This document shows positions 13,955 to 15,006 of a stretch of 64,000 nt of DNA, piece by piece. The stretch spans positions 1-64,000 of IMG/VR virus record IMGVR_UViG_3300020810_001156; one strand, given 5' to 3'. The position numbers and the translations under genes were made by a program. How positions within the stretch are numbered: the stretch's first letter is position 1; every line of letters starts with the position of its first letter. The notes under the pieces are model-generated. The model did not search any database. It was not told where the DNA came from and saw nothing but the letters and a program-made list of their open reading frames with translations.

Positions 13955-13984
13955 AATCCACCCCAAAAAGGTGGGTTTTCTTTT
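13955..13984 (+). terminator. intrinsic terminator
   Basis: AATCCACC/GGTGGGTT hairpin followed by TTCTTTT. Confidence 0.7.
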
Positions 13985-14045
13985 GCGCCAAATCCAAATG
14001 AACTCGAAGTTGGAAAACCAAGATAAAAATAATATAGCTAAGAAT
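13985..14045. repeat. imperfect ~60-bp repeat, copy 1 (copy 2 at 16530-16585)
   Basis: GCGC-AAATC..AAC-CGAAG-TGGA..AAG-TAAAAATAA-ATAGCTAAGAAT shared; each copy follows a terminator. Confidence 0.65.
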
Positions 14046-14141
14046 AGTAGTAATCAATATAGTATAGGTATAGAAGATATATAAGATAAAGAATAAGAAG
14101 ATATAATAGTTATATTAAATAACCCCAAATACCACCCAGCT

Positions 14142-14297
14142 ATGATAACTCAGAAAGAACTCATCCATATGTACTATAAGATATGTGATATAGAAGAGGA
14201 ATTGTATGTTAACCCCTTCCCCAACGATAAGATACTCCTCCTGACCGAAGATTTAAAAAAGACTATCATCAATAGAGTAGATGAAGCTCCTAAATAA
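14142..14297 (+). CDS. small hypothetical protein (51 aa)
   Basis: MITQKELIHMYYKICDIEEELY...; not in ORF track. Confidence 0.45.
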   Translation: MITQKELIHMYYKICDIEEELYVNPFPNDKILLLTEDLKKTIINRVDEAPK

Positions 14298-14426
14298 TCA
14301 AACCATCAACACTCTTTTACCATAAGAGTTAGGATAATGACACCCCCATATAATTAACTATACCGATATACACCTATAAGCATATATTCTAATACTTATA
14401 TACAAATAGGTTTATTTCTATCTCTA

Positions 14427-14462
14427 TCCCACTACCTACCACTTTCCCCCACTTTTCCCCAC
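14427..14462 (-). promoter_or_regulatory. four GTGG boxes at exact 10-bp period (MraZ-operator-like array)
   Basis: Minus strand reads GTGGGG-AAAA-GTGGGG-GAAA-GTGGTA-GGTA-GTGGGA. Confidence 0.55.
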
Positions 14463-14665
14463 CTAATAACATACTACTAAATAATTAGCTAAGAAAAGTA
14501 CTCTATCACCATGGTAGAGGGGCTTGTGTGTGTGTTGGTATCGCTGCAAATTTTCCTGGCCCTGATTCTGATACTATCTCCGAGCCACCTTACCCCTTTA
14601 ACCCCTAAATCCCATAAGCGCTTAGAGACAATCCCTGAGAGAGCTTGGAAATTGGGCTGTAAGAG

Positions 14666-14697
14666 CTAATATACAAAAAAGAAATGAGATATACAAG
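14666..14697 (-). promoter_or_regulatory. Bacteroidota sigma-A-type promoter, minus strand, firing into non-coding DNA
   Basis: Reverse complement: CTTG-N20-TATATTAG. Confidence 0.7.
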
Positions 14698-14707
14698 CCA
14701 TATGGCC

Positions 14708-14810
14708 TGACAATTCGTCATTGTGGATAACTTTTTTTATTAACACCAAAATGTGGATAACTTTTCAAGCGGCTGTTGATAACTTTTTAGCTTGATTTGA
14801 CAAATTGTCA
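14708..14810. promoter_or_regulatory. three co-oriented DnaA boxes flanked by two TGACAAnTTGTCA-type palindromes
   Basis: TGTGGATAA at 14722 and 14752, TGTTGATAA at 14774, each followed by CTTTT; palindromes at 14708-14720 (imperfect) and 14798-14810. Confidence 0.75.
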
Positions 14811-14819
14811 TACAAATAA

Positions 14820-14851
14820 TTTGGATATATCATTTATTTTTCGTATCTTTA
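14820..14851 (+). promoter_or_regulatory. Bacteroidota sigma-A-type promoter upstream of candidate sRNA
   Basis: TTTG 14820-14823, TATCTTTA 14844-14851. Confidence 0.65.
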
Positions 14852-14854
14852 AGG

Positions 14855-14925
14855 GTGGCTGGGTGGGAGTAGTATAGGGGAAAACAGCGAATACTGCCGC
14901 AGGAATTAGATTCACCGGCAGTCAC
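14855..14925 (+). ncRNA. candidate structured small RNA
   Basis: Own promoter; closing stem GTGGCTG/CAGTCAC plus GGTG/CACC; inner stem GTAGTAT/ATACTGC; no ORF. Confidence 0.4.
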
Positions 14926-14959
14926 GACAAAAAAAATATTAAAAAAAAGTGAGAAAAGG

Positions 14960-15006
14960 CTTGCATGATTCAAATTAATTTCGTATATTAGTACTGTAAT
15001 TGAGAG
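14960..15006 (+). promoter_or_regulatory. Bacteroidota sigma-A-type promoter with TACTGTAATTGAGAG tail
   Basis: CTTG 14960-14963, TATATTAG 14984-14991. Confidence 0.8.

Follow-up and report, generated by a model that had tools for sequence, protein, structure and literature searches.

The locus and its surroundings

In this work we have examined a short array of repeats in a window of 64,000 nucleotides, which is the first part of a single viral contig of 252,603 bp (IMG/VR record IMGVR_UViG_3300020810_001156). The contig is rated complete by CheckV, has 32% G+C and carries almost all of its genes on the + strand, most of them without annotation. The array lies in non-coding DNA, within a gene-poor stretch of about 1 kb. 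The left boundary of this stretch is a hairpin followed by a T-run (13958-13986, + strand), which terminates the upstream gene for a 258-aa endonuclease-VII-like protein and is conserved in L146, a related viral locus that is syntenic with the window. It is followed by a gene for a 51-aa protein of unknown function (14142-14297, + strand), which is real, since a homologous ORF sits at the same place in L146 (40% amino acid identity, E 1e-10), its codon usage is frame-specific and RNA contigs cover it. The next gene begins at 15000. Between the two, at 14427-14462, the + strand reads TCCCAC (14427-32), TACC, TACCAC (14437-42), TTTC, CCCCAC (14447-52), TTTT and CCCCAC (14457-62). The minus strand therefore reads GTGGGG (14462-14457), AAAA, GTGGGG (14452-14447), GAAA, GTGGTA (14442-14437), GGTA and GTGGGA (14432-14427), with cores starting at 14429, 14439, 14449 and 14459 on the + strand and thus six nucleotides between cores and an exact period of 10 bp. 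The array described in the original prediction is accordingly confirmed. It is far beyond chance: when periods of 7-14 were scanned on both strands, it was the only run of four CCAC/GTGG cores in the whole genome and the only run of three or more at a 10-bp period. All three of the host-type two-box sites in the genome lie inside it, whereas composition-matched shuffles gave a mean of 0.075 per genome.

To the right of the array there is a conserved non-coding block (14564-14662) which is 85% identical to L146 but is absent from the lineages of three further relatives, L005, L016 and L017. It shows no stable fold on either strand (z -0.25 and 0.08). Next comes a promoter of the Bacteroidota type on the minus strand (14699-14666; -33 TTG at 14696-14694 and -7 TATATTAG at 14673-14666), which points left, towards the array, and is conserved in L146 with a perfect TAnnTTTG box. 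Two TGACA-N3-TGTCA palindromes, TGACAATTCGTCA at 14708-14720 and the perfect TGACAAATTGTCA at 14798-14810, flank three direct 14-mers, TGT(G/T)GATAACTTTT, which begin at 14722, 14752 and 14774 (14722-14787, + strand). The palindromes are putative operators for a dimeric, probably phage-encoded, regulator. They recur 2-4 times in the equivalent region of every relative, 3-4 times in L005, L016 and L017 (L005 at 5372, 5430, 5506 and 6610; L016 at 13032, 13091 and 13178), and a search with the pattern TATGACAYNTTGTCA found clusters of them, but no arrays, in the unrelated low-GC phage contigs L026 and L028. Could the 14-mers belong to a replication origin? Two of them contain a perfect DnaA-box 9-mer of the TTATCCACA type and one has a single mismatch, but relatives carry TGTTGATAA or TGTTAATAA instead, and TGTTGATAAC/TGTTAATAAC variants of the 14-mer, in either orientation, so that the perfect DnaA-box cores are not conserved. 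Read on the other strand (AAAAGTTATCMACA), the 14-mers equal the A/T-rich element found immediately 5' of the MraZ boxes in many host mraZ promoters (AAGTTATYAACAA). However, the word AAGTTATYAACA, which joins the two, is no commoner in host genomes than its reversed control (about 168 against about 300), so the link is only suggestive and we did not retain it as independent evidence.

The stretch ends with a rightward promoter (14818-14851; -33 TTTG at 14820-23 and an unusual -7 box, TATCTTTA, at 14844-51), which is followed by a G-rich start, GGGTGGCTGGGTGGGAG (14853-69), and a hairpin (z -2.3; 14818-14935 in all), and with the promoter of the gene at 15000. The rightward promoter and the G-rich start are conserved in L005, L016 and L017, where two of the GTGG cores are 10 bp apart; this may be a small RNA or a leader. 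In L005 (6490-6600) and L017 (1060-1150) a conserved element of about 90 nt, ending in a strong terminator (…CTCTCTCCTATCCTAAGTGTTCATCCGAACCACCCA…GTGGGTTTTTTT), lies upstream of a second copy of the palindrome and promoter module and may also be a small RNA. The promoters follow the Bacteroidota pattern (TTTG, about 19-21 nt, TAnnTTTG), and about 40 copies precede + strand genes across the genome. A subclass of them, for example at 1445, 2226, 14979, 38682, 39076 and 39728 of the window, is followed by a conserved leader, GTACTGTAATTGAGAG, and clusters at 224-252 kb and 1-40 kb of the contig; this is likely the early gene class. The nearest cultured relatives by helicase (about 38% identity) infect Cellulophaga and Bacteroides, and the host is therefore very probably a member of Bacteroidota.

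The samples are salt-marsh metagenomes, and four metatranscriptomes hold the region. DNA coverage is flat at about 30x, whereas RNA contigs cover about 13973-14469, including the array, at 8-26x. RNA coverage over 14510-14725 is zero in two runs and low in the third, little or no RNA is seen downstream of the leftward promoter, and RNA depth at the rightward promoter is 7-14. The array thus lies at the end of a transcribed segment which includes the 51-aa gene, next to a silent operator block. The Logan contigs carry no direction, and we rejected their ends as transcript ends, because DNA contigs break at the same places and the breaks reflect strain variation. One RNA contig joins 14456 to 14798. 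In this co-occurring variant, which lacks the 341 nt from 14457 to 14797 and with them the conserved block, the array lies next to the second palindrome and the rightward promoter.

Comparison with mraZ promoters and conservation among relatives

The original prediction likened the array to the operators of MraZ, which lie upstream of dcw operons. According to published work, MraZ boxes are GTG(G/T) with six spacer nucleotides, three boxes in most bacteria and four in some, and each is read by one subunit of an opened ring (PMC12957436, a cryo-EM study of Mycoplasma genitalium). Operators of this kind have been described in the mraZ/dcw promoter of E. coli (Eraso et al. 2014) and of B. subtilis, where the triple GTGG[A/T]G-N4 repeat is found only at P_mra (bioRxiv 10.1101/2022.02.09.479790). 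We asked if the resemblance also holds for the likely host class, and searched 81 genomes of the class containing Flavobacteriaceae for the MraZ family, which 73 of them have. Of the 31 mraZ loci that we retrieved, 17 carry at least three exact GTGG boxes at a 10-bp period, or 22 if GTG or TGGG cores are allowed. These arrays lie roughly 55-80 nt before the start codon and begin 65-91 nt before the first MraZ domain. Their hexamers are GTGGTA (28), GTGGGA (10) and GTGGGG (4), preceded and followed by A/T, and these are the hexamers of the phage array. On a profile of 52 boxes from the mraZ promoters of this class the phage boxes score 10.4-13.0 bits, compared with a host mean of 12.6, although this is a comparison with the class and not with the operator of the host species itself. 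Across the 81 genomes, GTGG-N6-GTGG-N6-GTGG has 54 matches, and comparison of coordinates places 43 of them, in 41 genomes, directly upstream of mraZ in the same orientation, whereas the pattern read backwards gives 24. The triple array is therefore almost single-copy in these genomes and close to diagnostic of the mraZ promoter.

The phage array differs from these operators in its context. In the host the boxes sit between an upstream A/T-rich element and the -7 box, so they overlap the promoter, and 13 of 17 host arrays are followed by TAnnTTT(G/A) within 18 nt. No such box follows the phage array, no -33/-7 elements are interleaved with it, and neither mraZ nor any other gene follows in the GTGG direction. 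It also has four boxes, and that of L146 five, where most host promoters sampled have three. The array should therefore be described as an operator mimic and not as an MraZ operator in the strict sense, and repression of a promoter in the host manner is not its mechanism. As the original prediction stated for the window, no mraZ gene is present, and six-frame searches of the whole genome found nothing with Pfam MraZ, with Pfam AbrB/MazE or with a full-length, class-specific HMM that we built from 29 host MraZ proteins.

Is the array conserved? A DNA search against 50,697 phage records gave no match, and a search for related loci with both flanking proteins returned only an identical contig from the same project. 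Relatives were instead reached through homologues of the flanking gene and through DNA patterns, among them a conserved promoter and leader pattern which does not include the array. Several relatives of the endonuclease-VII-like gene (L003, L008-L013) have no gap and no array at that position, so the module is not tied to that gene. L005, L016 (with L022) and L017, however, have equivalent gene-free regions with three boxes at the same period and differing spacers: GTGGTA-aacg-GTGGGA-gaaa-GTGGTA in L005, GTGGTA-tcgg-GTGGTA-gaaa-GTGGGA in L016 and GTGGTA-ttaa-GTGGTA-aaaa-GTGGAA in L017. Among these three, which were found independently of the array, none of the 12 core positions varies, while 7 of the other 14 do (P = 0.005). 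In the pairwise alignment with the five-box array of L146, the array of the window with 4 nt on each side is 39/41 identical (95%), whereas the flanks are 40% and 55% identical and the neighbouring protein is 40% identical. Loss of phasing among relatives had been named in advance as an outcome that would count against the MraZ reading, but the 10-bp phasing is conserved in all five diverged lineages. Variants within the samples also keep the box consensus: in the salt-marsh DNA and RNA contigs a change of 14457-58 from CC to TA turns GTGGGG into GTGGTA, and another change falls in a spacer. DNA depth at the array in the salt-marsh DNA run is about three times that of the flanks, as expected if several co-occurring genotypes share the array but differ around it.

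Stand-alone arrays in other phages

Similar arrays recur in many other phage contigs. The pattern GTGGKA-N4 three times gave at least 117 stretches in IMG/VR, and the reversed pattern gave 92 in a complete scan. After removal of perfect tandem repeats and duplicates, loci below 42% G+C hold at least 41 arrays against 4 for the reversed control, or at least 36 against 1 with A/T-rich spacers. None of the 116 loci examined (L128-L243) encodes MraZ. Of 43 arrays, 31 lie outside open frames of 80 codons or more and only one is followed by a -7 box, which points to a site that works by itself. They include large phages, with contigs of 105-353 kb, and a family sharing GTGGTAAAAG-GTGGTAWTAT-GTGGKAAT. 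In 11 of 22 loci that are whole contigs, the array lies within 700 nt of a contig end (for example L128, L147, L153, L160, L168 and L173); together with the raised DNA depth described above, this suggests that the conserved array, shared among divergent genotypes, breaks assemblies. Such an array is not a general requirement, since four cultured Bacteroidota phages have no triple array.

The Firmicutes-type pattern GTGGWG-N4 three times also gave at least 120 stretches (L336-L455), with 38 unique non-tandem arrays below 42% G+C and no mraZ nearby, although these counts stand without a matched control. Arrays of GTGGAG-N4 are frequent among them, in clearly related families such as aaaGTGGAGTAAAGTGGAGCAAAGTGGAGaat. 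Loci with GTGGWG arrays show more Shine-Dalgarno-type starts (0.57 against 0.26 per kb) and fewer Bacteroidota-type promoters (0.19 against 0.30 per kb) than loci with GTGGKA arrays, a trend in the direction expected if box flavour follows host type.

Possible role of the array

The simplest account is that the array is a stand-alone binding site for host MraZ, maintained by selection in this phage lineage and, it seems, in others, and we consider this more likely than not. Four GTGG-core boxes spaced exactly one helical turn apart present four identical major-groove sites on one face of the DNA, which is the geometry established for the opened MraZ ring of M. genitalium. As the phage has no MraZ of its own, the ligand would be that of the host. 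Our data demonstrate the sequence identity with the host-class operator, the uniqueness of the array in the phage genome, purifying selection on its cores and phasing, and the recurrence of such arrays in other phages; that host MraZ binds, and whatever follows from binding, we only infer. The interpretation in the original prediction is thus partly supported. The MraZ-like nature of the array, on which it rested, is strongly supported, and its suggestion of a site for a phage AbrB/MraZ-fold protein finds no support, while its suggestion of a decoy which de-represses division and cell-wall genes is compatible with the stand-alone nature of the phage arrays but remains a hypothesis.

What could binding achieve? 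Our leading version, which is tentative, is a sink. As phage DNA replicates, hundreds of copies with 4-5 boxes would compete with the single 3-box host operator and draw MraZ off it, which would de-repress mraZ and the dcw genes. The stand-alone nature of the site, its single copy per genome and the 4-5 boxes in the window/L146 lineage favour this view, but it presupposes that MraZ is limiting and that de-repression of dcw benefits the phage. A close second, about equally possible, is local action at the edge of the early promoter and operator hub, where bound MraZ would act as a roadblock or insulator between the transcript of the 51-aa gene and the hub, or would tie the hub's promoters to host MraZ level. 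The constant proximity of the array to the hub in five lineages favours this alternative, and our data do not separate the two. A broader and more doubtful possibility is that phages from several lineages and host phyla carry stand-alone arrays matching the box flavour of their host's MraZ operator and use them as molecular sinks, so that replicating phage DNA would strip MraZ from the single host operator and reprogramme the division and cell-wall operon. This would be a takeover strategy that needs no phage protein at all, and would add protein-free regulator titration to the known ways in which phages take over cells.

The physiological role of MraZ is still debated, and its only well-established target is its own promoter. 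A conserved operator copy in a phage genome, together with the apparent enrichment of such copies across low-GC phages, would be the first MraZ site known outside the dcw promoter and would give a natural handle on what MraZ does; perhaps the phage reads host division status through it, or manipulates that status by titration. In the literature searched we found no report of MraZ sites in phages. Phages do carry sites for other conserved host DNA-binding proteins and so couple themselves to host physiology, such as LexA boxes in temperate phages and DnaA boxes in the replication regions of P1 and lambda, but here the factor would be MraZ and the site is not part of an evident promoter or origin. 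Titration loci such as E. coli datA for DnaA, and transcription-factor decoy sites in general, are clusters of high-affinity sites with no promoter of their own, which act by drawing a low-abundance protein away from its regulatory target and whose copy number rises with replication. In the present case the effect, which is wholly inferred, would act across genomes, with phage DNA titrating a host regulator.

Other explanations appear less likely. The least likely is that the array is a functionless relic, a piece of a host mraZ promoter picked up by recombination, or a chance low-complexity run. Phages do capture host DNA and the array resembles host DNA closely, but no mraZ remnant and no -7 box follow it, its flanks show no similarity to host promoters beyond a common A/T-rich word, the two-box expectation from shuffles speaks against chance, and a relic would decay, whereas the cores are invariant across lineages whose flanks and neighbouring protein have diverged to 40-55%. 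A role at the level of RNA is also very unlikely, although it cannot be fully excluded because RNA contigs run through the array while the neighbouring region is silent. The array could be a C-rich, unstructured tail of the 51-aa gene's mRNA, as the + strand of 14298-14510 is almost free of G, or a G-rich antisense RNA or G-quadruplex, as a conserved leftward promoter points at it. However, Rfam searches at gathering and relaxed thresholds (best relaxed hit E 0.34, lying elsewhere) and a tRNA scan gave nothing relevant, the array is unpaired in the + strand fold and the minus-strand fold is not significant (z -1.58). G-quadruplex potential is lost in relatives whose boxes are GTGGTA, a strong + strand terminator lies between the 51-aa gene and the array in L146, little RNA is seen downstream of the leftward promoter, and a 10-bp phase with invariant 4-nt cores is a DNA-face signature. 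As the G-runs are not conserved and the folds are not significant, we rejected the G-quadruplex and RNA-structure readings.

Somewhat more plausible, though still unlikely, is that the array is bound by a phage-encoded protein which our profiles could not recognise, as iterons for a replication initiator, a partition or packaging site, or an operator for a phage repressor, in which case the likeness to MraZ operators would be convergent. Phased short direct repeats are typical of many phage and plasmid cis sites, most genes of this phage lack annotation, and the array lies beside the palindromes and the 14-mers with DnaA-box cores. Against this, the hexamers, flanking A/T preference, period and box number match the host-class operator in detail, no MraZ or AbrB-fold gene was found, the perfect DnaA-box cores are not conserved in relatives, and a shared host factor explains the same kind of array in many unrelated phage contigs more simply than many phage proteins converging on one specificity. 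In favour of a phage-encoded protein, in the 276-kb relative L016/L022 the whole array and operator module lies inside a 2,023-bp terminal overlap of the contig (L016 12489-14511 and L022 1-2023, with one mismatch), which may be a true terminal repeat. This overlap starts inside a small zinc-ribbon ORF (two CxxC pairs, about 46 aa), which precedes the C-rich non-coding region in the L005/L016 lineage (L005 4705-4845; L016 12395-12527), whereas the window/L146 lineage has the unrelated 51-aa gene at that position.
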